DNA of 64,000 bases from Chlorokybus atmophyticus (GCA_009103225.1 RHPI01003369.1:975490-1039489), one strand, 5' to 3'; counted from the stretch's first letter, positions 21,974-48,213 are shown. The notes: generated from the sequence alone by a model not told the origin. A program made the numbers and translations.

Positions 21974-23249
<1,276 letters not shown>

Positions 23250-25819
23250 NCGCTGCAGGTAGGTCTGTACCTGTTACTGTTATCGGCATTGCTGCTGTCG
23301 TTGTTGTTCTCATTGGGGCGCGCCTGCACACACACTCGCGCACATGCACGCTTGTGCATGCATGTACACTGGCGAACACATGTACACACAGGCGCACAGA
23401 AACACGCCAGCATGCCGGTGTTAATGGTCCATGACAATGCTGTCTCCGCAACCAACCGCACATCGTCCACATTCTGCTCACCCGTAAGCACCTGCACTCC
23501 CTGACGCACCAAGTCACACCTCTACTCGCACACGCGCACGCACACACGCCGATCGCCTGGCCCGGTGGAGGACCCTCGGCGGCCGCCCCTTTGCTCCTCC
23601 TGGCCAAAAATTAACGACATTAGCAATGCCTTTGACGCCCTTCGGGTGAGCCAGCACCTCAACCAAGTGCATATATATTCGCATGTACGCGGTATGTGTC
23701 TGCTTGCGTGTGTGAGGAGTTGCATCATGAGCATCTGTTGGTCTGTGTGTGCGTGCGCCGTCAGGGCAAGTCGGTGTGCGAGATTTGCACACATGCATCG
23801 AAGGTTTGTGGATGCCTACGTCTGAGGATGTGTGTGTGCATGTGCTTCAGTGGGTGCTTAAGTGTGTATAATAAACACACACAAGCAGTGCATGCGCACT
23901 ATGCACAAGTATTAGCAGGTGTGGACGTGTGGTCAATCATTGTCATTTCGTGCTTGTGCGAAAACGTTTGTGGGAGCAGTTGTGCTGCACGGGATGCGCA
24001 TGGCAGTTCAGCTCGGGGGAGGTGTCATATGCAGCAGTGGTAGCAGTCTTAGCATGGTACATTTTCACACAGCTTGAAATGCAGTCATTGCATGCATTTG
24101 CGTCAATCAGTATCGTACACAACAATGTATGATGTGCATTATCATGTTGTCGGCTGCCTCATTCTGTTCATCAGCGGGTCAAAGCCGTGATCTCAATTTG
24201 ATTACTCAATACTAGTGTGTGCATGCGCGTTTGTGTGCACGTGCTTGCGCATGGCAGCGTGTGGACTGCATTTGTAGAGAGTAAGTAAGATCAATGCGCT
24301 CACTTCCGAACATGATTACTCGCACACAGCACATTCTCATACAGATGAAACTACTAGTACAGCAACATCGTCACACAAAGCTACGCATTGTCAGCCATGC
24401 CTATCACACTGCACCAGTAAACTCACACGCACGCCAGCACACCTACACATCTACACGGCTGCAGCCGCCAGCACAGCGTCTGCTTCCGACGTTGGCGCTG
24501 CCGTCTGGACTGGTCCCCAGCCTGGTACGGCCGCCACGACCGCCGCCCCACGCTCCAGGATGGTGATGCCATGAGCACGCTGCAGCGCGCAAGCCAGCGT
24601 CCTCCTAGCGCACATGTGTGATGACGTCGTGAAAACTCTGGCCCAGGGTGCCGTGCGTCTCGGCGGCGAGGGGATGGAACACAAGTGAAGACGGATGCAA
24701 CTGAAGGCGGACGGACGCGATGGACGAGTGCAAATACATGGGGAGAGGCAGTGCAATGCCCGTGTTGTTGAAGTCAAGAGCACATGGGCGCAGCAACTCA
24801 GGGACCTTTTTGCCGAGCATGCCAAGGTCTACGGCCTTGGTACGGCTGACGAAACCCTAAGTATGCAGTGGCAAAGGTCCTTGTTACTGGCAAAGGCAGC
24901 TGCGACAGCAGTTGTCATGGTGGCGGAGGTTGGGAGCGGTGGCGGGGGGAGTCTGCTGGTCGTTGTGGTCATCAACGTGGTCCTACTCAAGGCTGACTAC
25001 TGGCGATGTGGCAGGTAATGCATGCTTGCAGACTGACAGGGTTGGGCAGTAGAGTAGTGAAGTAAGTAGTAGGTAGTGTGCACCTAGCCCGGTGGTCGTG
25101 AGAGGTGAGTGTGAATGTGGTTAAGTGTTTATGCATGTGTCGTGCATGTTGCATACATCACGTGCGTATTCTGAACACAGGGGTACTCCACATGGAGAGT
25201 GTTGATATGCTGATGGTGCTAACAATGCTGCCGCTTACCTCCACGTGCACCACCATGGGAATTGAAACGAGATTAATCAGCATCAATAACAGATCGTTCA
25301 ACAGTTACAACACACTACTGCGATAGACTTTGTCGGGAATGTCTCAAATCTGCGGTATAGTCGGTGTATACAGTATATGCAATGCGTTGATCATACCATG
25401 ATAGTTGTAGCCACCTGTTTGGTGCCTACAATATGCAAGTGGCAGCAAATGCTGCGGTGATTGCTGGCACTGCCATGATGGTGTAATGCTGCGCATTGTG
25501 CAGCGCTGTCTGATGCTGTATGTGGTTGTGGCTGCGCTGCGGTTTGATGAGTGTGGTGCGAGGTAGCGCGCAACTGGCTATGATGCACTCATGTACATGT
25601 GTGCGTAGAGTACATAGATGTGTGTGACAATGGCCATGTCATACCATCAGTGACATTTGCGAATGGCAGAGTGCAACTAACAAACCCAACCGCAACACAA
25701 CACAACACAACACACTTGCATGGTGCCAGAAGCATGAGAGATGCGTCTGCAAACCAGACCAAACAACTAACTACGAGCTGTACAAGAAGCACACGACGCC
25801 AAAACTCCTCCTGCGGACC

Positions 25820-28230
25820 CTACTCCTGCAACAAATCCGTCGGGGTGGGCTTGCGTATAAGTCCCATCACGCCAGCTTCCACGGTATCTTCCGTCAACGG
25901 CATGGACGCCACATCCTCATTGCTGGTGTTGACCAAGTCCAGCATGCCCGCTGGCAGTGTGGTGTCACTGAGCTTGTGGTGATACATATGGAGCAGGCGC
26001 GCATTGAGGGCCAGCGACTCGGACAAGCGGTGCATGAAGTTCAGCAGCGCGATGACTTCGTTGCGTTGGAGGTCAAGAGAAGGAATTGGTTGATTTTCGA
26101 CAGAGAATAGGATTTTCAATGAGGTGGCGATGCCTAGAATCTGCAGCTTGCCCCAAAGCCGACACTTCTCGCAGCCAACGCAGTCCATGATGGCCGTGAT
26201 GTTCTGAAACCTCGCTTTAAGTTGCTCCATAAGCAGCGGACCGTCCTGGCCACGCCATAGAGTGCCCTCATCAAACGGCAACGGACAGGAAGCCTGCACA
26301 GCACCATCATGTCATTGACACAACACGAACACACAAACACATGAGATCGAACTGAACACATACCTGCAAAGCGGTGCTGTGAACAAGATCCTTAACAAGC
26401 TGCAGTGTTCGTGCATCTTCAGCTTGCTGGCCAGTATCATAGCTGGCTTGAGCAAGGTAGTCTGCTGCCTTGGTGACGGCTCGCGTGACAAAGAGAAAGG
26501 CAAAGTACAAGTTCTCTTGTCTCTCTGTAAACTGTCCAACACGGTCCCAGTAGAGCTGCAGGTGCGGTCCCCACAGTCCTTTGTCCTCGTCAAGAAGATA
26601 CTCTCCAGCTATGTGTATGGAAATGGAAGTATGCATGCCAGATATCAGCTTGTGAAACACCCGCGCCTCCGTGCAGGTGTCCTTATCACTCTCATTGGAG
26701 AAGAAACAGTTCTCATGATAAATTGCGTCCCACACTCGCCTGGCCGTCTCGCCAACATAACCCGTGAACCTCTCGGGGTTCTGCCGCAGGTTCACGTAGA
26801 TGGTCTCGCAGCACGACTCGTTCTCCATCGTCCACGGGTTGTCGGTCTCTCTCCAACCACGAAACACGGTCTTGTCGAGGAAGAGGTCCGCCTTGCCGAG
26901 CGGGTTCTCAGCAACGCAAGCCTCGTCGTCCTCCTGAGGCTCACGCCACATCGATGGCACCTCCTCGTCCGGACACTCCTCGACGGAACAATCGCGCATG
27001 CGGCACATGGCGTCGTCAGGGAAGAAATGGCAATCGCCCCACAAGTTCACCTGTTTGCAACCAGTATTGCTATGACGCTGAGTGCTCTTCACAATTTCTT
27101 CGTTTGTGTAACAGCAGCATTTCAAGACATAACTGGATGTGCGGTAGCAGCAGCAGATCTACCTTGAAATATCTGAAGAAGGGGGTGGTCACCAGGTTGG
27201 ACAACACCGGCTTAAATACATCTTCATTGAGCTGGTCAACTGTCGCGTAATCACAACAACAATCGCTTACAGTGCCGTTGAGCTGAAAGCTAGCCTGCGG
27301 GGTCACAACAGCAACATTACTACTACACAACAACATGAATTGTGTAGACATGTGCAATTCTTGCAGATGGGTACATACATATCAACGACGGATCACTACA
27401 GGGTTGATACACAGGCATGTCGGCGCATGACAAGATTATGCAACCCTGGCTTTTAGCAGAACAGACGAGACCAACATTGGAACGCATCTGAAAATGGGTG
27501 CGACAGGTGCTGAGATTATCAGCGCCATACGATAAGAGACAACAGTCAAGGACCGCAGATTGCACCCTTTGAGCAAACGCTTCATCAGCAGCGACATCAG
27601 CATAAACAAGGCTACAGTTGTGAGGCAGAACAGCAACGCCGGGCTTTGGAACTTGCCATGTAAGGCTTGCCTATATCAGGACCACTGATGACATAAGTTG
27701 AGATAGTATCAACTAACATGGTGTACGACATGACAACGCAAGCTAGTATGCTGTTTGTTATCGGTGCAAGTGACAAAACCTGCTCAGTCGCAGGGACCAG
27801 CTGTACACAGGTACTGAAGGCCACTACACCGCAGCAACCTATTTACCTCTAGAACGTACTGTTGTCATCTCAGACATACAGCTGCGCATGCCACGACGCT
27901 GGCACATAGCTTCAGCTGACCAATCGTGAGAACAGGATGTATGCAATGATGTTGGCACGTCTTATTCACGACGATCTGTTTGTCCCAAGATATACTGTTG
28001 GTTGGCTACTGACTAGTACTGATATGAAACATTCCTATAACTGCACGGCATGTTGCAGCAAAAGGAACGACTGATACCTGGCAAGAACACGAATCATCAA
28101 CTCCTCCATGTACATCCCCTTTGTTCCATCCACGATAGTTCGCTGGCAAATACACACGCGCAGCAAGCACGGCGAGCACAACAACCAATACAGCCGCCGC
28201 CGCTGCTCGCCACCTCCCCTTCTCCTCCAT
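25820..28230 (-). CDS. ERO1: ER oxidoreductin 1, multi-exon
   Basis: Signal-anchor N-terminus; DCCCDYATVD; FFRYFK|VNLWGDCHFFPDDAMCRMRDCSV; YVNLRQNPERFTGY; LISGMHTSISIH; CVGCEKCRLWGKLQ active-site motif; LQRNEVIAL. Confidence 0.95.
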
Positions 28231-29440: not shown

Positions 29441-30434
29441 CTAAAGCTTCAGTCCTGGGTACTGCGCAAGCTTCGCACGCTTGTCGGCCTTCCGCGATTC
29501 CCGCTTGGTGATACCAGCCTCAATCTCCCTCTCCCTCTTGATAGTCAGGCAGACTGCAATCTGAACAGCAGAAAAACACAACTTAGCACACACAATAGCA
29601 CAATGCACGCACTACAAGGAAGAAACAGTCGCTTGTAGCGTAGGCATGTGTGTGCAAGTATGCGAGTACTCCTTACCTTCTTGCAAAGGGCGAGTGTTTG
29701 CATATGCATGTGTGCACTTGTATACCAACACTCCTTACCTTCTTGCGAAGTGGCTTGAAGTCTGAGGTCTTGATCTGCTGGCGTGTGCCCTGCTTCATCC
29801 TGAGCTGGAAGAGGTCCTTCCTCGCGGTCTCCACCTGCGCGTCCAGCTCCTCATTGGTCAGCGCCCTCAGCTCCTGCGCAGGGGACGCCACCTTCGCCAC
29901 CACGACGCAACCCGATGAGGATCGCTGCGCTGCAACCGGCGCCACTGGCCTTACGCTCAGCGCTGATCCGGCGAAGCTGCTGCGGCTAGCCTTGAAAGAG
30001 GCCACCTGCAAGCCAAAGACCACACCCATTCCATTGGGGAACAAAAGCAACGTCACATACTGGCATAGTAAAAACCCAGGTTAACAATCTCCTTCGTGCA
30101 ATCAGAAGGGGGCTGCAAGAAGGATGTGTTGATTGGGCCGCCTAGCTAAGCGTTGTTGCAAGCAGAATGTTCACAACCAAAGCCGCATGTGTTGCGGACC
30201 TCTGTGGATTAAGGTCTATAAGCAGCAATGTCCGATTGCCAGAACTACGCAAATGCCGAATCTGACGCTGACGTCCAGCAACACGAGAATGGATAGGTAA
30301 TATGCATCAAGGGTTTGAGCTTGCTACTGGCTCTCCTGGCGGCAATGCCGGCGCCGCCCTACCATGACACCCTGCGCAAGAATTCCACGGCATTGCCATC
30401 ACGTGGTGCTTACCTGTGCCATGGCGGCAGCCAT
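29441..30434 (-). CDS. RPL29: Plastid ribosomal protein L29 (uL29c), 3 exons (30434-30414, 30005-29740, 29560-29441)
   Basis: Ser/Ala-rich transit peptide, then ELRALTNEELDAQVETARKDLFQLRMKQ...FKPLRKK|IAVCLTIKREREIEAGITKRESRK. Clean GT-AG junctions. Confidence 0.93.
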
Positions 30435-30559: not shown

Positions 30560-30973
30560 TTTTGCGGCGCAACCGCTGCAGATATCAAGGGCACGCTATC
30601 AACTTTCTCGATATCGGTACATTTTGCATGGACCCTGCGATGCAGTCATTTGACGGACGCGATCGAGCACACGTGTCCACATGCGAACGTCACTCACTTG
30701 GCTGAAGTGTCAATTAGGCCTAAGTCTCTGTTAATGCTACAAGGGCTTTAATTCTATACCGGTAGTTCATGTTCCAGCCTTTGATCTATATTCTTTGGCC
30801 AAACATCAAGATATGCTGAATTGAGTGCATGGATGTTGGTGTGCGCATCATGTCACCTTGACTCAATCAATTGTTATAATAGCGTCAAAGTGCTGCTAAT
30901 GAATGCACAGTATATACTGCAAGTCAATGCCTATGCATATGCCACTGACACTGCTAGTGTCGCCCTTGCTGCG

Positions 30974-31462
30974 AGTGAGTGAGTGCACCAGGCCATCTCG
31001 TTATGTACTGGTGCTTGCGTGATCTGTCAATGCTTGCACCATAAGCAAGCGACGGCTATTAGCAATGGGAAAGCGCGTTAACAATACCTGCAGGCATCTT
31101 GCGTGTTGTGTTGTGTTGCGTTAAATATATGACCATGTGCACCATGGTGGCGGCGGGGCTCAGTCAGTTGTTGGTTCCAGCATCGTCAGCGTCGTTGTTA
31201 TCCTGGTGTGGACGTATGGACTCGGCGTAACACCCACGCTTTTGCTGCGCAGGTGGTGGTTCTATTTACCTACTCTGTTTGTCCCGCCCTGCCTTCCCTC
31301 CAGCAAAGTGTAGCCCGTTGATTGTGTTGCTGCTGTTGGTTGTAGTGTCCTAGATATTGCAATTGGTTGTATTGAGTGCTGTCTGAGCCCCGGCTCAAAT
31401 TGTTGCAAATGCAAGCATGTGTGTAAATGAGTGCGCATGTGTTCTGCAATCTTTTGCTTTAT
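30974..31462 (+). repeat. Direct repeat copy A (~490 bp)
   Basis: Aligns by eye with 44342-44836 from agtgagtgagtgcacca to tgcaatcttttgct. The first 60 bp show 6 mismatches; overall identity is roughly 80-85% with small indels. Confidence 0.92.
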
Positions 31463-31561
31463 ATATATATAAGCTCTGGACCCTGGTCGACTCAAGCGCG
31501 TTTCATATGCACACGCCTTAATCCCATTGCCACAGCCCGCCTGAGGTAGGTCACTTGGGCC

Positions 31562-32705
31562 ATGCACTTAGTCAGCTATGCATCACAGTGCATTGTGGCG
31601 TGGCTATGCATTGTTTGCCGCAGTTCACAACCGGCAGTTTGGAGCCCGGTACAGAATTGTACACAGTTGTATACCTTGAGCAGGTGGTTGGTACGTATGA
31701 ATGGCGTTAAACTGCACACCGACCTACCAATGCCTCCTGATTTGGATGCCCAGTGCCGTCGTATTCTGCAAGTGCACACCTACTGGAGTCCCTCCATGTT
31801 ACAAAAGATACACAGCAATCGCATGTTTTATTTGCGCATTACTAAGATGTTTGACCTCTTCACAGATACGCATGTGATCTATGTAATGTATCCAACTTCC
31901 GGATACAACAGTACTATGTGGGTCTTACTGCGCAAATTGCTTTCGAGCGTTTCAAGTCACATGTGGAAGCAGCCAGCCAACCAACAGCAACACCTCCGGA
32001 GGCTATGCTAGCCTTGGGCATAAACGTTTAGGGCATCACACCGGTTGAGCAAATCCCCATTGCACCGTTCAATGATTGACGCAGCTTGGCGCAAAGCCGC
32101 CCTCGAATGTGTACATGGATTCAGATCATCAGATCAAATTGCTCGCCCACAGGGCTACAACCAGGAAGCAAAGGGCACCCCCATGTCATGCAATCCTAAA
32201 ACACGTGCACGTGTGGTTGTAAGACACGGAGTGCAACCAGTAATACACGTGGCAATGCATGCGCAAGCACTTATGCCATGTCATTTCAAGTATTGTGATT
32301 ACATATGACGTTTGCAACACTTACAGTCGTGCATGCAACGTGGTTCTTTTTCCACCAACATGCTGAAGGCGTACAAACAGAAAAACTTGTTTCACATGCT
32401 CAATCTATTGCTAACAAGGCAGCATGTGCAGTTAGGTCTGGAAAATCGCAGTGCCACAACACTCATCAAGAAAAGCCTTAAAGAAGGCTACCGTGTACTT
32501 GCTTACCACACGCATCAACACCCACACAACTACAAGGATGGTAATTCTCTGCACGTTCCCATGTGCGGTGGCTGATCTCTTCACATATAACAGGGTGTAT
32601 GATGGCTGCCAAGTCCAAGTTGCCGGACCATGTGCAGCAGCCCTTCGTACAACCCATGGTGCACTGGACATACAAAAACACCCTGGGTCAAGCCATCTGC
32701 AATAA
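31562..32705 (+). pseudogene. TET/JBP-like 2OG/Fe(II) dioxygenase, disrupted
   Basis: ORFs 31562, 32045 and 32312 share one frame separated only by point stops (32009, 32021, 32306). The frame leads to YHTHQHPHNYKDGNSL (32504-32551), colinear with the TET iron-binding strand (human TET2 AHAHRDLHNMQNGSTL) but with D->H. After a frameshift near 32570 comes GG.DLF and a distal HG at 32655, about 48-50 codons from the first His. Confidence 0.62.
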
Positions 32706-33849
32706 GTTAGCAGTGATAGCATGCTTGACTTAGGCAGTGCAACAATCATTGCTTGATGCGCAGTGTCCTTGTTATGCACCGCATCTTGCTGCCCATTTAC
32801 ATGCTCGGCTAGGACATGTGGTGGGTTGCGACTATGCGCCTACGTCAGCAACGTAGGCGCAGCTACTAATTGCTGGGACAAAGTACAGACCCTCAGCAGC
32901 AGCATGTGTCAAACTGTGTGCATTGGTTGCTATGTCGGCTGCGTGAAAATTCGTAGAGGTGATGAATACCAAGCACCGTCAGCCTGACCTCTTCATAGAA
33001 TTGGGATCTGCAGTTGTGAAAGCATTAAGGGAGAATGCAAACACCATCAATGACCTTCCAACAGTGCCAGCCCTTACATATGGAGCAAGTGATCGCCGAT
33101 TGGTGTGGGATCCGCATGATTCTTTTGTGTTCAACTTTGTGAGTTATGGAAGTAGACAAATGTAGCAGGGTATTTGCTATAATGTGCAAATGGTACTACT
33201 TCACTTTATTACGCGCTGAGCTGGCCACTGATTCGTACACACCGGTGGAAGAGAGCTGATTGGCAATGTTGCAACGATTGACTGAGTCCGCAGCTGGCAC
33301 TTCAGTCCCATTCTAAGATGTCGTGATGATTCAAACATCTGACGTGGGCTTGTGCACACGGTCCTACAACAAATCAACACTGCCACATATTGCCACAATC
33401 CCCAAAAAAACGGGCTCCACACCCACAGAGCAACATTGCAAGAGTGTAAAAGATGGGAGTGGTAGTCTCCCAGTGGATTCGTTTCTTGCGTTTATCAACA
33501 TATCGCTCACACTTCCTCATGACATTGTTATCTTATGGTGTGCTATGATTGCTCAAGGGTATAACAAGCAGCAGCTGTTGGGTGTGTTTTGGCAAAAGCA
33601 GCTTCGTACCATTGAACGGTTCAATCAGGATATATATGCAGAGACTCACCCTGGACGTGCAATGGCTCGATCGTACCATAATAATGGTACGACGGAGTCA
33701 GTGAATGGCGGCCAAGTTTCCCGCCTCTGGCATGCAAGGGTAGCGGTGGCGGTGGCGATGGCGGCGGCGGCGGCGGCGGCGGGTGTGCGTGTTGCTGGAT
33801 ATGATGCAGGTTACATTGGCGACACCTGTGTCGACGTCAGTAGTGAGAT

Positions 33850-36800
33850 ATGGGAGTCATTTGTCCGTATTGCCACATGCGTGTTGCCACACGCAGCTCG
33901 GTCTACATGCACATTGTTAGCAGCAGGGTGTGCAAGCAACTGAAGTTGTATGTCCGCCAGCGTCCATTACAGAACGATGCGGGTCATGTTGAATCGGGGA
34001 GTTCGATCCAGGATGCGCACATGCTTGATGCTGAAGGATTCCTCCAGGATACACACGCACAGCAGCAACAGGAGGAGGAGGAAGTGAACGAGGGCTTTCG
34101 ATGTGTGCGTGTGCCTGAGAAACCTGTGGCACGCCAACATGGAAGTGGAGGCGTCCCTTCGCACGCGTCGGAATCCAGGTGGTATGGCTCGGAGCATGCT
34201 CTTGCAGTGGCATTCGTGCAGTGCAACAACGGCCAAGGCCTGTCGGCCTCCGACATGGGGCGGATCATCACGTGCATCCGAAATGCACACTTTCTGATGG
34301 AAGAGCTCCAATGGGAGATCGGTGTGCATGTGGCCAGCTACCTCCGGACCACAATTGCTTTCTCTTAGTTTGAGGTGTGTTCACGGTGTGCGGTGCATGT
34401 GCTTCAACCATCAGAGCCATGTCATATATGCACATGCGAGTGTGCTGCTGTACCAGAACTACGTGACGGCTGACCTGCGCAAGCCTTGAGACCCTGAAGA
34501 TCAGGAAATCAACGTCACATATATGCCGGCCAAGGTATGTAAAATGCAGTACCCAATGCAGTATCGCTGCAGTATCTATTCTGAGGCCAGCATGCCTGTT
34601 AATGCTCTTGGTCGGAGCAGGTATGGCTCGCGCGGTTGTATAGCGATCCACATGCCGCCAATGGTTTCAATCTCCAATATAATGGTGACGAGCACAGCTT
34701 TGGCCATCCTTCCACGGGCGATTGGTGGAAGGATGTGGAGGTGGATTTGAGGAGAGAGGTGGGGGAAGCGTCCTACTTGGCGCCTGCCATTTTGTACAGT
34801 GACAAGACCACGCTGGACAGCGCGGGCAAGCGCTCTGGCTACCCTCTGATGGCATCACTTGCCAACTATAGTTGGGACATGTATGCTAGCAACATGGGGG
34901 TTGTTATGATAGCGCTTCTGCCGGTGGTTCACGCAGTGGCCGGGCAGCTCACCTGGGCGCAGGGCAAAGAATTGTTCTCCATTCGAAAACGTAAGATTTT
35001 TCATGACGCTTTGAATGTAGTGTTAGGGGATGTGAAGCGGGCGAGTTAGGAAGGTCTGCAGCTCGTTGATTCGAATGGCATCGAGCGTCGTGTGTTTCCC
35101 GCGCTTGCCAACTACATCAGCGACTTGCAGGTAGTGGGCATGCATGGTTGTAACCGGATGCAGCCTGCCAGCAAACAGTGCATGGAGGATGTTGTCAGTA
35201 GAGCATCTGAGTTTGTCGTGTTGTAGGAGACTGCCACACTCGCACGCACTGTGTCGGGCAACCAAACACGACATCCTTGCGGAGTTTGTCTCATCACCAA
35301 ATCAGATCTGTTGGAGATGGATGAAGACCGGGAATTAAGAACCGAGGCCTTCTACACACCAGCAATACATCAGCTGCGGGCGACCTGCATAGCGGTGTTT
35401 GGAATGCACGCCAGACTGCCAAGGCTTTCAAAGAGCAGCACTCCATGCGTGTCGAGGAGGTAATGGTGAATTTACTGGCATTCGTGAGGATGAATGGCTT
35501 TCCATGAAACCAGGCAATATGGTTTGGCAACAGAATGCACTGTGGGGTTGGCGATAGTTGCGGGTGCCGGGAACTGACTGCTACTCTCATCTTGCCCCTG
35601 ACGCAATGCATGTGCTGGGAGGCATTATTGACCATCTGCTTGCTGCTGTGTACGGCGCTGCGAAGGAACGAATGCGTCCATCCATGAGACAGAATCTGCA
35701 GGCCAGGCACGTCTTTGGTGTTGCTTTAATGTTGAACACAAAAGCTGACGACTCGTGCCCACAAGCAGATGTGCACTGGCTGAATGCATGCAAAGCGACT
35801 CTACGGGTTTCGCACTTCAAGGCACCCACAAGCACAGTAGATTTCTTCCTGTCCGACCACTCCTTTCAGGTGGTGGAGAACGTGGCGGTGCTGCAGCTGC
35901 TGCCGGTCCTTGCCGACAGTTTGCTGCCCGACAGTGAGGCCAACAATTTCTTCACCATTGCTGCCGCATCGCTTGTCCAGTGGAACAAGAAGTTGCTCAA
36001 GGCGCATGAACACATAAGGGAGACTCTGACCACAGCCGACAACGAGCTGGCTGCCTTTAAAGCTGCAGTGTTGCATCCGCTACTATCGTCATATTATGCA
36101 CAAAAATTAGGTTGGAAGATCGAGAAGATGCATCAGCTCACTCATTTTGGGCTGGTAATTGTCAGCAGTGGACACCCTAATTGGTTCAGCGCCAACCGCA
36201 TGGAGCAGACGCACGCCCATAGTATCAAACGGTGGGTGCGTGGTGGCAACAACCGGGACTACCAGGCGCGTAACCTGAAGGCATGGAGCTGTGCGGAATA
36301 CGTGAGAGAGGATGGCATGGTCGTGGATCCCGAGATGCGCTCGGTCATGGCGCAGGCACGGCAGCATTGCTGTAATATAACGGAGATAACGGACAAGTTG
36401 CTACGGATGGATGTGCTGACAAGGAGGGAGTCCAGCCCGTACTTCAGCGGATCTGCGCGTAGCCGTCAAGTCGCCCTGAAGACTCCACTCGCCGACAAGC
36501 TGCCTGCCACCCTGGACAGCTGGTTGAGGAGGGAACAACTGGAGGTGGCCGCCGGGTGGCGTGCTGTTCGCGTGGTGGAGGCGCAGCGGTGTACATGACA
36601 TCAGGAGTCGGCATGGCGCGCGCAACTGAGATGTTTCATGGGCGGCCTTGGTTCTCTACACTTGAGTTGGAAGGTGATGAGGACGGTGTGAACGTGACGT
36701 GGTGGTCTCGGGCACTTCTTTATTTGCGCGTGGTGGTGTGGGGTGGTAGCGGCGAGCGCGTGTGGCAAGAGGTCGTGCTTGTCCGCTGGTACACGAAGCT

Positions 36801-36942
36801 GGATGTGACGAGCAACAAAAAGTGCATCGCTCTGGAATGGGAAAAGCGTCGAGGGGGTCCACATCTCGATGTCGTGACTCTGGACAGCGCCCGTGTACAA
36901 GAGGGCAAGTATTGGGTGAACGTTCACTGCACTGCCACGTGA
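33850..36942 (+). pseudogene. Plavaka-family transposase, spliced, with multiple stops and frameshifts
   Basis: N-terminal C2H2 (CPYC...H...C); HPSTGDWW; ILYSDKT...GYPLMASLAN; RRVFPALANYISDLQ|E...HPCGVC; PDAMH; KIEKMHQLTH...NWFSANRMEQTH...GNNRDY; C-terminal FHGRPWFS...VLVRWY. Stops at 34487, 35047 and 35555; frameshifts near 35380 and 36585. Confidence 0.88.
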
Positions 36943-37163
36943 TACATGTACTTGTCTCACTACTCTGAGTTTGGAGCATATCAGTCAATTAGGCATTGTT
37001 AATCGTATGGTAAGACTTTTGCATGTGGACGTGTACAATACCGGGCAGCTGTCACTGCACAACTTTCACCACAATCGAATGTGCCATGCAACATTCAACA
37101 ATCAGTCCGCCGTGTGGCATTAATCATCAATACAGTGCACCACACTCAAGCCTCATGGTTCCA

Positions 37164-37934
37164 TCACACAGGAGGGTAGTCACAGTGCATATCCATGGTT
37201 TTAAGCATGAGACGCCCTATGCACTCCGCTATTGCGGGAGGAACTGCATTCGCTATGGTAACGGCCGAGGTCATCCATGGCACTCCCAGCGCTGTTTGTC
37301 AAGCAGCAATGCCGCCCGTGGTGCTTAAAAGGCCATAGACCGGGTACATTTGCTGTGGCGCGTTGGATGTCATGATTATCTTCTTCGCGCTAGCGGACAG
37401 GTGCGGCGATAGCAGTCCAACCGCCTTGCCCGCGTGCAAGCAGTGTGCTGGTGGGGTAGCTACCATTGGCTGTGTCTCAAGCAGACGGTGTCGGACACTT
37501 GATAGGCCAAATATCGTGCCACAAAGGGACAGATTGGGTCTGAATGAGGAAGCTGCTCCTGGCACATTCTCAATCATAAACTTGACCTGGCTTGCAAGCA
37601 GCAGATGTCGGACGAGCGGTATCATATCCTTGTGTCTCCAGGAAGTGCCATGTGACGCCCGTTGAGGTGCCGGGATAGCACCTGAATAGGCCTGGCATGG
37701 AAGACTGGCCCATATGAGCTCGTACTCGCTCAGCTCTCCTGCACTCAGGGTGCATACATCGCGGTGTATGAAGGGCAGCGGGTACTTAGAGGAGGGACTT
37801 ATGTCCATCCCGGTCACGTCAAAGCCTGCATGATATCGACCGACACTGGCACCGCCATCGCCGCAAAATAGGTCGAGTGCCCTTGATCTGCGTATGCGTC
37901 CAAGCTTGTTGTCAAATGGCGTATATGTGGTCAA
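37164..37934 (-). pseudogene. C5 cytosine DNA methyltransferase catalytic domain (compact phage/bacterial-like type) with an internal TGA
   Basis: Motif I DLFCGDGG; motif IV WASLPCQAYS (catalytic Cys kept); motif VI IENVPG; LCGTIFGL; motif VIII RHR. Reading through TGA 37299-37301 gives *QTALGVPWMT...IANAVPPAIAECIG (motifs IX/X), with a stop at 37164. Confidence 0.9.
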
Positions 37935-38069
37935 GGCTGGCCGTGGTGCTGGTCAGGGACTAAGAATAATGCAGTCCGGGCTTACTTTGCGACTGACGTT
38001 CTCCCCTCTGGCGCGCAAAACATGGCGTGCCCCGTCAACTGATGTGTACGCAAATACGTTGTGCTTATT

Positions 38070-38282
38070 GAAGTTGATGGTTTGTGGTCGATCACCGTCA
38101 TCGAATACTATACGGTGCTGCCCTGCAAAGACACTTTCCATTGCACCATGCATATATGATCAGTATTCAATCTCGCACGCCACGAAGCGATGCTGACTTG
38201 ACGCTTGCTTGAATGATTCCACAACGCCCGCATACCCTTCCCCATCCAGCGGCCAATGCACCATGACACTCACACCAATCAG
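38070..38282 (-). pseudogene. Tudor domain (MSH6/PDS5-like) in frame with the DNMT
   Basis: Removing a 75 nt GT-AG intron (38197-38123) gives LIGVSVMVHWPLDGEGYAGVVESFKQASRQHRIVFDDGD. This continues in frame to the DNMT through a single TGA at 37953-37955. Confidence 0.75.
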
Positions 38283-39429
38283 CTGCTCGCATCCCAACTT
38301 AACTGCGTTCCGCAGCCGATGATGTGCNCTGTACAACGGTTGATGGTCTGCCTCCTCTACAGCGGCCCGGGGATGGAAGTGCCCACACTCACACTGTGGA
38401 AGACTGCTCTGAATGCGACAACAGCTTCAACATGCATGAAATAAGCATACGCCCAACATACCATGCAGTGATACGTCGCGGTCCACTCTGCCAAATTTCC
38501 TCCACAGCATCCACCTGTCCACTCACCACATGTCCTAGTGTTGGCCATGTGAAGAAGCGCATGGGTTCCCCTCGCCACTCGAAGCATGGGTGCGAGCACA
38601 ATTTGCACACGCACTGCACGCAATGGAAAAACTCGGAATCTTTGCACAACACTTGGCCGAGGCAGCAGCCAAACACGTCGACATTGTGTGTGGTATGATG
38701 CCAGCAAGCAGCACTAAAACCGTGGCACACTGTCTGCACTCGCTGGCATTCGGTCAAGTGTGCTCCCATTTGCTGCCTACGGCCATTGGCACATACGTAC
38801 GTATTGCATTGTGGGCACACCAAGCATGGGCCTAGATGAGGGGGATTCAACTGCTGCCGCCGACATCATGCAAAATAGGAATCGGCACGGCTGCCCACAA
38901 ACTAAGCGAGACTTTATGGTATGAGCATCAATTTAAGGTTGCCAGCTTACGAACCTTAAATGGGTCAAACTTCAAGTGAAGCACGACTGTACCATGGACG
39001 CTATTGCAAACCCATGCATGGTACTACATAAACATAAATGGTATCCCATGTATTAATGGTACTACAGTACAAGGATACTCGCATACTACCACGATCGTAG
39101 GGTAATACTGTGCTGTCATTCCATGAAACCCAGAGCGCTGTCCGAGTTTGTTGCTGTCAACCACGCTCCGAACCAGCGAGGTATGCAAGCCATGCACTGA
39201 CTCATGCCCCGGGCAGTCATCATACACATGTATAGCCAATGCTTCTGACAACAGCAGATCTCGGGTGCACCATGCACCATGCTGCAACTATACATGTACC
39301 TACATGGTTTACAGGCAGCCAACACAAAACTACAATACATGCACAATTGTCATCAAGGCGGGGGCCAAATCACCGCCGACACGTTGGCGTCTTGCATCAG
39401 GCGTGGCGACCAAAACGGGTGGGGTTGCT

Positions 39430-39590
39430 TGCAGAAGGGACACGTTTGTAAAATCTTTGATTTATTTGCCACGGTAATCTGACGTGCTATGATGCAGACG
39501 TGGCACATCGCTTTCTTGCAACAGGGCGTCTCCCCATGCGCGGGGGGGGGGGGGGGCTCTTTAATGCGACAAATCAGCACACATGGTGCA
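39430..39590 (-). pseudogene. RING-like zinc finger exon
   Basis: CVLICRIKE...TPCCKKAMCHVCI...TCPFCKQ has RING-type Cys spacing and lies on the same strand as the OTU and DNMT. Confidence 0.55.
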
Positions 39591-40917
39591 CGCGGGTGCG
39601 CAAGCTGCCTCTGCCATCAAACTCTGTTATCACGTCGCAGGCGTAGCGACTCCCATATAATGGCGCAGCACAACGCTCCACTGCCTGCTCGATCACCTGA
39701 CGCCCATCCGCCGCCATACACCACCTGCTGGTCGTGGTGGTCTCGTCCAGCATGCGTTCATCTAGGCCCTCGACATGGCTGTCGTCACTCGTGTACTCCC
39801 CCGCATCGCCATTTTCTTCGAGCTGCCCCACAATCAGTGCGACATGCCGTGTGACATACAGCCACTGCCAGCCAAAGCATGCCAAGTATAACTCGAATGG
39901 TTCTACTTGCCACCCAGCATGTTTGCTCAGGTACGGCACACATCTCGACCCGCATCAGTCGACATCGATAGGTACATCTGCTGCAGCAGGTCGAAGTTCT
40001 GCTCCGCGGATAGCTCTTACACATTGCCGGGTTGCTGCGGCAGCAACAACACCATCATATCGAGGACGGCGAGGGGCAACAACGTACTACGGATGGCCAT
40101 ATCGTGTATGGGTTCCAACCATGGCCAATCCCCGAAGGTCTGTTTAGACCGCACTCTCCTGATTTACTCCCACTTATTGCATACTTTCGTCACCCACCTT
40201 GAGGCATGCCGCATGCGGTGATGCAGCGCGTCTTGGGCGTATTGTAGGGCGATCAACTCCTTTGCACTACGACTTAGCCCCTCAAGGCGTCTGCGCGTCG
40301 GTGCTTTGAGCTTAGGCAGCTCGTGCCGCACCGACAGTCTCGCTGGTCGATGCTGAGCAGCAACTTGACGCTGTAAACCCGCATGTGCCTACTCAGGACA
40401 CACAGTCAGCCCTAGTGAGGCTTCAAGGCGTTGTGCTTCTTCTAACGTTGTAACAAACGATGCCTCACCTTTCCTTCTTTGGTCCTGTCAGCGTCCCTTG
40501 TTCCAACAACCTTCTGCTTCTTTTGTCAACCTGCACATCCTGGCAGGCGCTCTCCGTGGCATTGTCACTCCGAGGAGGTAAGGCGTTATCTTGCTCCACA
40601 GCCTTGCGCTTGTTGGTTGCCTCCCGTTCCTCCACGACCTGATGTTGCTTCATGAGGTCGAGCAAGCCTTTGTCTTTCAGCGCAGCTTTCAGGACACCTC
40701 AATCAATCTCTTTACCAACAAGACAGGCTGGGATCAATGTGGCAAGCTTAAAGGGAGAGGGCGAGCTACAGCTGCTTTTTGATAAAGATGCCTCCGAATG
40801 GTCAAAGTGCCGTGGCAAGTGAGTCTCCATGGCAGGAAGGGAGGGTGCTGAATTGTTATTGCGAGCATGTGGCTGTGGTTGAGGGGAGGCAGGATGTGCA
40901 GAACACTTGGCTACTTC

Positions 40918-41790
40918 TTACCTAGCGCACAAAGGCGAGGCCTCAGGCGTTGGCGCAGCACTTCGGGTCACATCTGATGGTAGCGGGGAATGGGCAACGC
41001 CATTCCGCCACTTTTCGATCAGGTCTGTTACCTCTGGTGGCACTTCATGCATAGGCCACGACCATTGTTCGGTGCTTGCAGGCTTGAGGAGCCAAAAGTG
41101 TGCTTCGGGCTCATCAGGAGCAGTGTTGCCCACCACTAGGACTGAGTTGGGGGCTTCTTTATTTCCAACCCAAACTGCGCTGCCGGGCCGTGGCACCCAC
41201 TCCCCATGCTCGCGCTGAACGGTCACGCAGCCAATCGACAAGCCCAACTTGTTAGCAAACATGGTCATCTGCAGGTGCTCGACGTACACATCTTTTCTCC
41301 GCACGATGTGTCGCACCTTGGCCATGGCTATGTCAATGTTGCAATTGACATCAGCCAACATCGTCGCAGGCAGTTTGTTGTAATACTGCGCCATCTCTCC
41401 CGCGGCACCAGTGGCTCTGCAGAAGTCTAGGATTCTGCTCGCCACGCCTGTATCGACAGCCTTGGCGGTGATTTTGCGGAGAGTGTCCCCCCTGCCGTCG
41501 TCGTCCATGGTGTCCAGCATGGCCCAAAATTTGCTCGAGATGGGGCACTTGTGATCATCCGAGACACTTTGCGCTATGGATGGCCTGGCGCGAAATACAC
41601 AATGGTAGAAGCAATTACCATCCGTTGGCGCATTGAAGTGGTCCCATGAGGCGAGCTGGCCACCTAGCATGACTGATGGCTGTATACGGGTTGCGGCCAG
41701 CTCCTCTGATGACTCGCTGGCAGGTGGTGACCCCTGCTGCATGCGCATACAGCACTCAAAAAGTGTGTCCAACTGGATGGCAAGAGTCAC
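40918..41790 (-). pseudogene. OTU-like cysteine protease (deubiquitinase) domain exon
   Basis: 290 aa open stretch with PTDGNCFYHCV (catalytic D/C) and a distal EAHFWLLKP (catalytic His). It ends at an AG|gtaag donor, and the neighbouring exons contain stops. Confidence 0.72.
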
Positions 41791-42736
41791 TGTGACTGAT
41801 AAAGTACTTGAGTTTGGGGCAGACTGCCGGCTTCAACTTGCAGCGGGTGGGGTAAGGTAGGTGCAGAAGCCACATCGGTTGTTGCATTGTGCTTCGGTCT
41901 CGCCGGTGGCGGTAAGAAGGATTGTTGCCCCGCAATCACCGATGCTGCTCGTGGAGGAGATGGCAGTGCATGAAGGACCGGTGCCGCGGAAGGTGGTTGC
42001 GCTCTGGCTGCGAGGGGAGCAGGAGCGGCAAGTGACTTGTGCATGCAGCAAGGGGGGCTGTATATAGGACTCTGGATAAGATGGCTCACGATGTTGCAAA
42101 GGACGAATATAAGCTTATGCAGTGCCTGACGCATTGTTACCAAGGCACGAGCATAAAAGACAGCGATTTACCTCAATGGCCCGTGGGCTGCATGGAGCAG
42201 GGGAAGCCATGGGGGCTGACAAGGTGGTATTGGGTGCACTCTCCCCGCCACCCTCGATCGCAGACTCGTCACGGAGCTTGTGAGCCATAGGGCACATCAT
42301 GCGCCATTGCCTCAATGAACATGTCGGGATTCAACAGGCTAACATGCATGTTAAACTGATGCCGCATTGCCGCTGCGCCCATCAGCAAGTGGGATTGAAG
42401 GACCAGTTGATGGGATTGAATCCAGGCTTGCACAGGAGCTCCAACATGACCTAGTGTATTGTGGTGCTGTCAACCAATCACATGTGGGTTGCCTGCATGC
42501 TTGCGACACTGCAATTGCAATATTCAACCGCGTCACATCATCATTAGTTGTTTGCTTCGAATAGTCACCTGCGGCATTGCCGGTTGATGCACAAATGATT
42601 GCATGGACTGCGTCATTGCTGGTTGATGCACTACCGGTTGAATGCCGGACGAATGGCCACGCGCTCCTGCGCTCAAACCCAGCCTACTTCGTTTTGCACG
42701 CGCGCGCGACTTCGCACGCTCACGCACATCCTCAGG

Positions 42737-42779
42737 ATGCCTACCTTTGCATGCTAGGCTAGCATGCAAAGGTAGGCAT
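42737..42779. repeat. Perfect 21 bp inverted repeat with a 1 nt spacer
   Basis: atgcctacctttgcatgctag-g-ctagcatgcaaaggtaggcat. Confidence 0.95.
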
Positions 42780-44341
42780 GCATTGGAGGTGCATGCAGTC
42801 AACATGCACAGTGAGATTGGCAACAACATACCACCACCCAGCTCTGTCCATCTGCTCTGGCTTTCGCAATGTCAGGTTGACTGTGGGGTGGGTATGGGTG
42901 AATAGTGGAGGCTTGCAGCCATGCTACATGTATCACATGGACTGCGCTAAAAAATAAATTGCTCTTGCAATGAAATGCATAGGACTGTTGAGCGTACCTC
43001 TGCATTCCTTTCTGCTTGTTCCCACAGCCGCAATTGGTCGCGCATGGTTTTGTCAAGGGGCTCCAAGAACTGCAGCTCATGATCCACTCCTTGTTGCAGA
43101 AAGCAAGCCACCAAGCAGCTCTCTGTGTGAAGGCCTTGGCATGAGTTTTCAGTTTTTCGCGGGTCTCATTATTACTAGTGATATATACCTTGACACACTG
43201 TGCTGTTAAGTTTAAGAGTGCACTTAAATCCACAGGTGCCACTTGAGAGCATTTGCTCAGTTGCAACACATTCATGTGCAACTTTCTCTTCTTATGTGAC
43301 ATGCCAACAAGCGCGAACTGCTGCCTAGTCACTCTGATACGGTATCAGAGTTGGTTGTGACTCTCGTGATTTGCGTTTTTTTCAACGCGTAGTGTGCGGT
43401 AGTTCAGTAGGGCTGTCCACCCTATCTGGCAATTATCGTGCAGGACACGAGTCTCATTCTTTGCAACATGGAAGTTGCAATGCAAGTGGGGAGGAATGTC
43501 ACGCTCAAAGGGCTGGCGAAAGTAACTTTCAGTTCCTTATTTATTTTATGTGGTAAGTAGGAGGGACCAAGTGAGGATTCCTCATGCCATACTGTGTAGC
43601 ACTTCGTATGTGTGCTTATGCGGTGAGTCCTTGTCTCCTTAGTAGTTAGGGCTATGTAGATGCACAAGGCACTGTATATCAACACGCACATGGCTGGTCG
43701 GTGCCATATGCTCCGACTTGTATAGTGCCAGCGCTATGACACTGGGGCAGCAGATACGTCACGTACGAACGAATGAACACGGTGTTGCAAGTGGCAAATT
43801 GCAAGTCAATCCTGCAATTTGCCAATATGATGTGTTTGGACAAGCACACAAAGAATTTTGGCAGATTCAAAATTCGGTTGACTTATCATGTATTTAACAA
43901 TTTTAAGGTTTTATAACCCCGATGTCGATGTCGTGTGACGGGACATGTCTTATATTGAACGCAATCAGCGTGCTCACATTGTGCTGAAGGTCAGCACAAT
44001 GTGACAAGGCCTTGAGCCTTGAAAATCATGTGTGCCAGGCCGGGAGAGCGGCAAGTGGTATATATGCTTAGTAGTAACCTTGATATGAATCAGAGTGTGT
44101 TCACCACTCAAGGGCCACTTGTGTGTGGGGTGCCTGGTTGCAGCTGTTACAGGCGCTCTCCCCCTCATCCATGTGGGTTGTGTGTGGCGTTCATGGGTGG
44201 CTGCACTTGTGTGTGTGTGTGGGAGCTGTTGGAGGGCTAATCCGGATGTGAAGTGCATAAGTTCTTTGTGCTTGTGCATAAAGAACTTATGTGCACTTTG
44301 TGAGGCTCACTATCAAGTCAGTGAGTGGTATCGATACAGCA

Positions 44342-44836
44342 AGTGAGTGAGTGCACCATGCCATCTCATTATCTATTGGTGCTTGCGTGATCTGCCAATG
44401 TTTGCATGACCATTGCATGACTAAGCGACGGCTATTAACAGTGGGAAAGCGCAATAACAATGCCTGCATGCATGTATAGTGCGTGTTGTGTTGCGTAGGA
44501 TATATGACCCTGTGCACCATGGTGGCAGCGGGCCCAGTCACTGGTTGGCTCCATCGTCTTCAGCGTCGTTGTCGTCTTGGTGTGGACGTGTGGATTCGGC
44601 CTAACACCCACACCTCTGCTGCGCAGGTGGTGGTCCTACCTACCTACTCTGTTTGTCCCGCCCTGCCTTCCCTCCAGCAAAGTGGAACCTGTTGGTTGTG
44701 TTGCTGCTATTGGTTGTACTGCCTTAAATTTTGCAGTTAGTTGTATTGAGCGCTGTCTAGGCCCCCGCCCAAACTGTTGCAATTGCAAGCATGTGTGTGA
44801 GCGAGTGCGCATGCGTTTTGCAATCTTTTGCTCTAT
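44342..44836 (+). repeat. Direct repeat copy B (~495 bp)
   Basis: Counterpart of 30974-31462 in the same orientation. Confidence 0.92.
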
Positions 44837-47137: not shown

Positions 47138-48213
47138 ATGGGTCCGCTGGCGATATTGAAGCGGCCGCTGCTGGAAGAGGGCGAAAGGGGGACGCCCAAG
47201 CACATGCGGGCGCCCATGATAGATGCCAAGGTTGGGCCCAGAGACAGCTTTCAAAGACTGCTGTTGCATGCTCGATCCAATCCCTTTGCGCTTGCTGTGA
47301 GCTTATGAAACCCTAATGTACTGCTACTTATCAATGCCTGATCAGCGTTGTTGCCTGGCCCTGCCTTTTCAGGTGGAGATCAAGGAAACCCAGGAAGCCT
47401 TCCTGTACGTTGTCAGCCTGCCCGGGCTGAAGAAAGAGGACATGGAGTTGCTTTTAAACCAAGGATGGTGAGTGCAAGGCATTGCCTTGATATAGAGACT
47501 AAGCGATCCTGGGATCTCAAATGTTGCAGTACTGTTGTTACATGCATCTTGCGTGCAATGTCAGTCCATGTCCTTTTGCCATGACAGCGATTGTGAGTTG
47601 TAAAGCATCACCAGTATCACCACATGTTGTTACGTCTAGTGGGCAATCGCCGAGTTGTCGTACTGATGTTGTGCGCTCTGTGTTCAGGGATAGCATGACG
47701 ATTACAGCAGATGTGGGGTTGTCATCCTGTAGCGACGAGGAGCGCGCAGCTATGCGCGAGTCAGGCGTGCAGTTCCGCGGCCGATTCCGCCGCACCCTCA
47801 GATTGCCCAAAGACTCTGACCGCGACAACATCAGGTACTACATGTTTTTGTTGTCTGCGCACTGCACAAACCACACTCGCACACGCATACACATAAGCCA
47901 GTGTGCATGTATCTCGTACCCGCGCACACGCAGCAGCTCACACGCAAGTGCTCATTCGCATGCACACCTGCAGCCGCACCCGTGTACGCGCATATGTGCA
48001 CAACACACGGATACATGCACCACCCACCCACCCACTTTCACTTTGTGCAGGGCGACGTGCACGCGGGAGGGTTTGCTCACTGTGACAGTCCCCCGGCAAA
48101 AGAAGAAAGTGCAGGAGGCAATGGCGATAATCAAGAAGCTACGCATCACCTCCTTCACCTTTGCTGGCTCATCGGAACCACAGCTCAACGGTGCAATGCT
48201 CTCGCCAATATAG
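47138..48213 (+). CDS. HSP20/alpha-crystallin-domain protein, multi-exon
   Basis: DAK|VEIKETQEAFLYVVSLPGLKKEDM...GRFRRTLRLPKDSDRDNIR|ATCTREGLLTVTVPR matches the ACD beta-strand pattern. Confidence 0.85.

Follow-up and report, generated by a model that had tools for sequence, protein, structure and literature searches.

How mobile DNA resists or exploits silencing by its host can be seen from transposons that encode enzymes acting on the marks of DNA or chromatin. In fungi, PlavakaB and further DNA transposons carry TET/JBP genes (PMC12730594; for the TET/JBP-carrying fungal transposons, Iyer et al. 2014 as cited in that paper), and in a red alga (Bostrychia) giant Plavaka elements of 13-19 kb, most copies of which are degenerate, bear the accessory genes PAG1-3 with an N6-adenine methylase-SET protein and a ParB-2-oxoglutarate (2OG) oxygenase (bioRxiv 10.1101/2025.02.11.637652). 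DNA methyltransferases (DNMTs) are found in the retrotransposons SymbioLINE, SymbioDIRS and Klebsormidium Copia (PMC5890265) and, as the same paper reports by citing Bao and Jurka 2013, also in DNA transposons of marine viruses. Orphan DNMTs of viral or bacterial descent are scattered across eukaryote genomes (PMC12344493), and Plavaka is already known in streptophyte algae (PMC13519894). Here we describe a decayed island of ~13 kb in the streptophyte alga Chlorokybus atmophyticus, located between the ordinary host genes RPL29 (left) and HSP20 (right) at positions 30,974 to 44,836 of a 64,000-nucleotide stretch (GCA_009103225.1 RHPI01003369.1:975490-1039489; the window), in which a Plavaka transposase relic on the plus strand faces, tail to tail, a minus-strand gene ending in a Tudor domain and a C5 cytosine DNMT. 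Plavaka in a streptophyte alga, transposons with epigenetic cargo and DNMTs in mobile elements are already known; what is new is the neighbour of the Plavaka transposase, a C5-DNMT of phage type to which a plant-type Tudor domain is fused. Whether transposase relic and accessory gene(s) are the remains of a single Plavaka transposon with Tudor-DNMT cargo is, in our judgement, an evenly balanced question.

With the red-algal giant Plavaka the locus shares the transposase, a large cargo of nucleic-acid- or chromatin-modifying kind, the size and the degeneracy, but its cargo consists of a C5 methylase with a fused Tudor domain, no oxygenase being detectable, and a single copy without termini contrasts with many copies with defined termini. 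With the fungal PlavakaB it has in common the transposase family and the principle that a transposon carries an enzyme related to 5-methylcytosine (5mC), yet there the cargo (TET/JBP) removes or modifies 5mC whereas here it writes 5mC, and the fungal termini (CATCA..TGATG, with target-site duplications (TSDs) of 2-3 bp) were not found. Common to this locus and the DNMT-bearing retrotransposons, one of which also comes from a streptophyte alga, is a mobile element with its own C5 methyltransferase. However, SymbioDIRS and Klebsormidium Copia hold a eukaryotic Dnmt3-type enzyme inside the coding region of the element, and SymbioLINE an orphan DNMT, whereas at the present locus the relic is that of a DNA transposon, and the methylase next to it is a phage-type mini-enzyme with a fused Tudor domain. 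An earlier note on this DNA had suggested that a Plavaka element pairing a 5mC writer with a 5mC modifier might be new; the general idea of Plavaka elements with epigenetic enzymes was already in print for fungi (PMC12730594) and red algae (bioRxiv 10.1101/2025.02.11.637652).

The identities, order, strands and frame of transposase, Tudor domain and DNMT, as well as their pseudogenisation, are matters of observation. Pfam profiles were run against all stop-to-stop open reading frames (ORFs) of at least 45 aa on both strands from 30.8 to 45.1 kb, and against shorter ORFs of 24-44 aa (plus strand, 31.46-34.65 kb) and 28-44 aa (minus strand, 37.9-44.3 kb); over the whole island these scans yielded only Plavaka and a weak DNA_methylase signal. 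Of eight island ORFs compared with PHROGs the DNMT alone matched, and in PDB sequence searches with nine queries the Tudor match alone was significant. The Plavaka signal lies in ORF 34603-35046, which matches PF18759 at 7.4e-15 (55.4 bits against a cut-off of 26.3; the match spans profile positions 82-198 of 325 only) and bears out the decayed plus-strand transposase proposed before. The frame reads on beyond two stops, at 35047 and ~35224, and includes a CxxC (HPCGVC), after which the coding signal moves to ORF 35558-36595 (DAMHVLGG) and again to ORF 36463-36939; upstream, a CPYC zinc-finger-like ORF start is seen near 33850-33862. The strings YSDKT, HPCGVC and DAMHVLGG are visible but scattered across broken frames, and are unaligned to reference transposases. 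Taken together, 33847-36939 (+) reads as a pseudogene of a Plavaka (EnSpm/CACTA-superfamily) transposase of ~1000 codons, interrupted by a few stops and shifts of frame. A homologue search with its C-terminal ORF came back empty in the length window used.

On the minus strand, and convergent with the transposase as the earlier note had it, the accessory gene ends in a C5 cytosine DNMT domain of the small phage/bacterial type (37164-37901, stop codon included). The domain itself (37901-37167) is contained in a single frame without frameshifts and displays the core motifs in canonical order (I DLFCGDGG, IV LPCQAYS, VI IENVPG, VIII VRHRLLE, X IANAVPP). A full HMMER search (phmmer, E up to 0.001) over 1.84 billion representatives returned 3321 relatives, nearly all of them proteins of ~220 aa, the best at E=3.5e-52 and ~44% identity; the domain aligns end to end with methylases of ~215 aa at 35-38% identity and matches phrog_363 ('DNA methyltransferase') at 2.9e-19. 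The Pfam check proposed for this domain gave only a weak PF00145 signal (19.7 bits, just under the 22-bit cut-off), which the best phmmer relatives do pass, so the family is confirmed by phmmer and phrog_363 and not by the Pfam profile. The reading ends in DYPPV-stop, at the same point as the two closest aligned homologues (P0003 and P0005), and its single internal stop (TGA, 37301-37299) is aligned with a Trp codon of the closest of them (P0003). It is an 'orphan' DNMT as PMC12344493 uses the term, readable until recently but broken now. The enzyme is not a eukaryotic DNMT1, DNMT3 or DNMT5; it belongs to the small phage/bacterial methylase family.

The top relatives sit in phage contigs together with Thy1, RNR, holin and terminase genes, and a sister group carries a methyl-CpG-binding domain (MBD), one of its members being located in a giant-virus-like contig (mRNA triphosphatase, topoisomerase II, kinases). 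A maximum-likelihood tree places the island DNMT in a large phage-type clade and outside the DNMT-MBD clade (SH-aLRT 97 for the split), a result that fixes the clade only and leaves the exact sister unresolved. A giant-virus origin of the DNMT was rejected on this placement. Compared with the phrog_363 methylases and the giant-virus DNMT-MBD proteins, identity is 35-45% over the whole domain, and motif order and C-terminal end are shared; however, the proteins of these two groups are stand-alone, tandem, MBD-fused or, in one case, fused to an IS1595 transposase fragment, and a Tudor domain or an N-terminal extension with an intron was seen in none of those checked. Some of these relatives are of interest in themselves. 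The JGI metagenome contig Ga0590114_0007790 (L005 9239-11035), which is giant-virus-like, has a gene for a mini C5-DNMT and, after it, one for an MBD, and also carries mRNA triphosphatase, topoisomerase II, kinases and a TBP-like gene; in related proteins (P0003, P0005, P0031, P0131) the MBD is situated between two methylase halves, i.e., a viral writer-reader fusion. Two phage contigs (L001 6816-8231 and L002 1402-2745) encode a tandem double-DNMT, with two complete mini-methylase domains in a protein of ~450 aa, and in the relative P0068 the methylase is fused to an IS1595-type transposase fragment.

Directly upstream of the DNMT and in its frame lies a Tudor domain of the PDS5C/RDM15 type (37956-38300, -), the halves of which, GVSVMVHWPLDGEGYAGVVESFKQ... 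and ...HRIVFDDGDRPQTINF, are split by an intron-like segment (38183-38118). The N-terminal half alone (piece 38163-38300) matches PDB entry 7DE9, an Arabidopsis Tudor domain of the PDS5C/RDM15 type, at E=5.2e-5 over the pattern VxVxWPxD..Y.GVVESF.., and the second half reads HRIVFDDGD... (the xDDGD strand). The second half alone found no PDB match, and Pfam was silent on the separate Tudor pieces, so that the proposed Tudor domain stands on the match of its first half and on the frame shared with the DNMT, and not on a profile hit. The segment of 66 nt between the halves contains a stop, begins with GT and ends with CAG; given these ends and the size of a host intron in the window (67 nt, in ERO1), it would most simply be a spliceosomal intron. 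A second TGA (37955-37953) falls in the Tudor-DNMT linker, where no in-frame splice removes it, and the 24 codons upstream of the DNMT contain no Met with which it could start by itself. Because the frame is shared and the extension offers the DNMT no start codon of its own, the predicted architecture is a Tudor-DNMT fusion with two nonsense mutations. In Arabidopsis, the PDS5C/RDM15 Tudor occurs in cohesin-associated proteins and proteins of RNA-directed DNA methylation, whereas here it appears to be fused to a methylase; we take this Tudor type to be a reader of H3K4me1 in that plant. A single N at 38328 marks a base-call ambiguity in the ORF just upstream of the Tudor domain.

The ends of the transposase and DNMT genes are 225 bp apart, tail to tail, inside one pair of repeats, and in both halves of the island a stop or break of the frame occurs roughly every 200-250 codons, in agreement with the similar decay that had been claimed for the plus- and minus-strand units. 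With the bracketing repeats (below) 16% divergent, this stop density roughly fits a decay of ~8% per copy. GC content, CpG observed/expected ratio and GC at third codon positions (GC3) are the same in both halves. We infer from this arrangement that the two units could have moved as one element. They could also be chance neighbours, a Plavaka relic that came to lie beside an unrelated decayed Tudor-DNMT gene of host or horizontally acquired origin, and maybe beside a separate OTU/RING gene, none of which was ever cargo. Such an origin would account for a plant-type Tudor, a host-sized intron and host-like GC3 and CpG throughout, no termini enclose both units, and the scatter of virus- or bacterium-derived orphan DNMTs in eukaryotes (PMC12344493) supplies a precedent. 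It has more difficulty with two pseudogenes found tail to tail at 225 bp, inside one repeat pair and decayed to a similar degree, in a region that is otherwise intact and gene-dense, and no intact DNMT paralogue of >50% identity turned up in a library that apparently holds the Chlorokybus proteome. We regard chance neighbourhood as somewhat unlikely, and as the alternative to be taken most seriously.

The island is bracketed, as the earlier note had described, by a direct repeat of ~495 bp (31462 being the inner end of the left copy, 30971-31462, and 44339 that of the right one, 44339-44836), the copies of which are 13.4 kb apart and agree at 83.8% of 500 aligned columns; no other sizeable repeat occurs in the window. 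The copies do not end in TG..CA, show no obvious TSD and, as far as we could see, lack a coding signal, and no sequence resembling a primer-binding site or polypurine tract was seen at their inner edges. Two direct repeats of this length and spacing, with a divergence compatible with an old insertion, might be taken for the long terminal repeats (LTRs) of a non-autonomous LTR-type element that was later invaded. That origin appears extremely unlikely to us, as neither strand gives a signal for reverse transcriptase, integrase, gag or protease, and the repeats themselves have the ends and inner edges just described; we rejected an LTR element on the missing reverse transcriptase and integrase domains and the missing TG..CA ends. 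The repeats bear also on a viral or episomal entry, in which a giant-virus fragment arrived or a circle integrated by a single crossover at the 495 bp of homology. Direct repeats flanking the whole insert are what single-crossover integration would leave, the DNMT family is viral/phage with close cousins in a giant-virus-like contig, and OTU and RING proteins, look-alikes of which lie upstream in the island, are common in giant viruses. However, the island contains no giant-virus hallmark gene or other viral family match, four of its ORFs scanned against viral contigs gave either nothing or circular matches, the tree places the DNMT apart from the giant-virus DNMT-MBD clade, composition is host-like, and a putative spliceosomal intron and a plant-type Tudor are present; we consider this entry improbable. 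Despite their overall likeness of ~84%, the two repeat copies share a core of 41 nt at 100% identity (31270-31310 and 44644-44684), which may be a constrained element or may be due to chance; the exact 41-mer was not found in metagenome contigs.

Several observations weigh against a single Plavaka element with Tudor-DNMT cargo. The bracket is real yet unlike the footprint of a DDE cut-and-paste transposon, because the repeat is direct and not inverted. Seeded ungapped matching of 30.5-33.9 against 41.8-46.0 kb gave no inverted match with at least 14 identities, and at the boundaries we found neither terminal inverted repeats (TIRs) of the TGT..ACA, CATCA..TGATG or CACTA type nor TSDs of 2-3 bp. 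No second copy was found in the 64-kb window or in the metagenome, viral and homologue collections (the host genome is not among them). By GC, CpG observed/expected and GC3 the island cannot be told from the host, and the Tudor part is plainly of plant-lineage type. Among 20 DNMT relatives that were checked (the nine best and eleven longer ones) none has a Tudor partner; what occurs instead is an MBD in some, a tandem DNMT in two and an IS1595 transposase fragment in one. The Tudor-DNMT fusion is known from one broken copy only. Finally, the OTU and RING parts of the presumed cargo are not verified by profiles. Since TIRs, TSDs and other copies were not found, the single mobile element is plausible but unproven. 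Every recognisable gene in the island is interrupted, and the locus is without function now.

Further modules lie upstream of the Tudor domain on the minus strand. The Cys-rich stretch noted before the Tudor does exist as a Cys/His-rich ORF (38392-38865), but its translation has no match in Pfam, PHROGs or the PDB that would give it an identity. At 39356-39616 a RING-like string, PCVLIC...PCCKKAMCHVCI...CPFC, is recognisable by its motif; it has no Pfam match, its best PDB match is TRIM30 at E=0.24 (which we take to be the RING-finger part of that protein), its first pair is a CxxxC, and a Lys occupies the His position. An OTU-like quasi-ORF of 471 codons with 2 stops extends over 40702-42114, and within it the intact ORF 40921-41832 (304 aa) carries DGNCFYHC and, ~175 residues later, AHFW. 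With E allowed up to 0.1, PF02338 does not match this ORF, and a search for homologues of 167-532 aa was empty; the best PDB matches of the ORF are fragments of nairovirus polymerase L of 170-176 aa at E=1.1, presumably the OTU domains of these polymerases, and an AlphaFold model made without alignment (pLDDT 35) was unusable. The metagenome scan and the viral-contig scans with four island ORFs found no relatives save OTU look-alikes, and as these had been selected via the motif itself the viral match is circular. The OTU and RING domains of the earlier note thus remain at the level of short motifs, and with them the ubiquitin-editing part of its proposal, for which two such motifs are the basis; a ubiquitin role is speculation. 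One more decayed quasi-ORF on this strand (42757-43536; 260 codons, 2 stops) has no family match.

Between the left repeat and the transposase, on the same strand as the latter, ~380 codons in one frame with 3 stops (31427-32572) read clearly as a decayed gene, which is probably what was earlier called a TET/JBP-like frame and taken for a 5mC-modifying enzyme. The frame has no Pfam match even at E up to 10, and two of its three stop-to-stop pieces compared with the PDB and one of the three compared with viral contigs returned only chance-level matches or nothing. No Tet_JBP or other 2OG-dioxygenase profile matched plus-strand ORFs of at least 24 aa at 31.46-34.65 kb or at least 45 aa at 30.8-37.3 kb, nor opposite-strand ORFs of at least 45 aa, with candidate frames tried to E 10, which is the result that the note itself had named as telling against the idea. 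Four candidate ORFs searched against PDB sequences, a set that we take to include TET2, NgTet1, CMD1 and JBP1, returned no TET or JBP entry. The frame ends at ~32.5 kb in AYHTHQHPHNYKDGNSL, with HxH where HxD is expected and no downstream partner that could be placed; the string presumably recalls the 'HxDxHN' strand of TET, with His in place of the iron-binding Asp. Hence the modifier half of the proposed writer-plus-modifier pairing has no signal in Pfam or PDB sequence searches, and without a TET/JBP partner the locus is not a writer-plus-eraser toolkit. One Plavaka element that united a DNMT writer, a TET/JBP modifier and OTU/RING ubiquitin editing could point to the long decayed ORF upstream of the transposase and on its strand, and to the fungal Plavaka and other DNA transposons with TET/JBP (PMC12730594). 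Against the silent profile and PDB searches, the missing HxD Asp in the sole TET-like string and the failure of OTU and RING in their profiles, we find this combination very improbable.

Returning to a single Plavaka element with Tudor-DNMT cargo, the island would have arisen by an insertion long ago, now dead, between the divergent RPL29 and HSP20 genes of a streptophyte alga. At its core would lie what is left of an autonomous DNA transposon of the Plavaka group (EnSpm/CACTA superfamily), the transposase of which (plus strand, ~33.85-36.94 kb) would converge on one or more multi-exon accessory genes (minus strand, ~42.1-37.16 kb) ending in the Tudor domain and then the DNMT, with the OTU-like and RING-like motifs further upstream in the same gene(s). 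When the element was alive its DDE transposase would have provided mobility, and the Tudor domain, to go by its identity, may have tethered a phage-derived C5 methylase of unspecified sequence preference to marked chromatin. In this manner the element could have carried its own histone-guided 5mC writer, acting on itself or on nearby host DNA, which are the targets that we infer for the methylase; a purpose (self-silencing, protection or manipulation of host genes) is not readable from the sequence. We tentatively suggest, as a possibility short of a probable one, that the ancestor was an autonomous giant Plavaka of early-diverging streptophyte algae whose cargo was a Tudor-DNMT, a 5mC writer guided by histone marks, possibly in one long protein with OTU/RING. 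If this is true, it would be the first DNA transposon known with its own chromatin-targeted cytosine methylase, and a new route by which a 5mC writer, wired to histone marks, entered a eukaryote near the base of the plant line. The locus is one dead copy with no defined ends, of value as a lead for a search of whole genomes and not as a demonstrated system; at other places in Chlorokybus genomes, copies with less decay may persist.

The surroundings of the island are otherwise intact and gene-dense, with ordinary intron-bearing eukaryotic genes, among them large exons of Ints3, ERO1 and a RecQ helicase. The two flanking genes had been described as intact, with the island within ~14 kb between them, and both signals are present: on the left a plastid-type RPL29 exon (29676-30080, -; Ribosomal_L29 profile 7e-10) with a transit-peptide-like N-terminus, and on the right a real but weak HSP20 signal (47503-48210, E=1.6e-4), which is not adjacent, as it begins 2.7 kb past the right repeat. 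Scans with Rfam and for tRNAs gave no RNA genes. Host exons are unusually long (e.g., a 625-codon ORF of Ints3 at 13038-14912, ERO1 at 26310-27158 and a RecQ-like helicase at 59318-60061, all on the minus strand) and host introns very short (~67 nt). With the Chlorokybus atmophyticus model Chrsp4S06292 the ERO1 exons share 86-98% identity, against 57% for the matches next in rank, which come from land plants; the window therefore stems from Chlorokybus or a very near relative, an early-diverging streptophyte alga. Among the ERO1 exons the one at 26364-27155 is just 86% identical to the C. atmophyticus protein model, with its neighbours (25823-26311 and 27154-28230) at 96-98%; either the published model is spliced otherwise there or the DNA comes from another species or strain of the complex. 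Further to the left, a (CT)n / CTCG-variant microsatellite of >1.2 kb (21977-23250) surrounds an assembly gap of 421 N and is the source of a strong GC and AT skew in its 2-kb bin.

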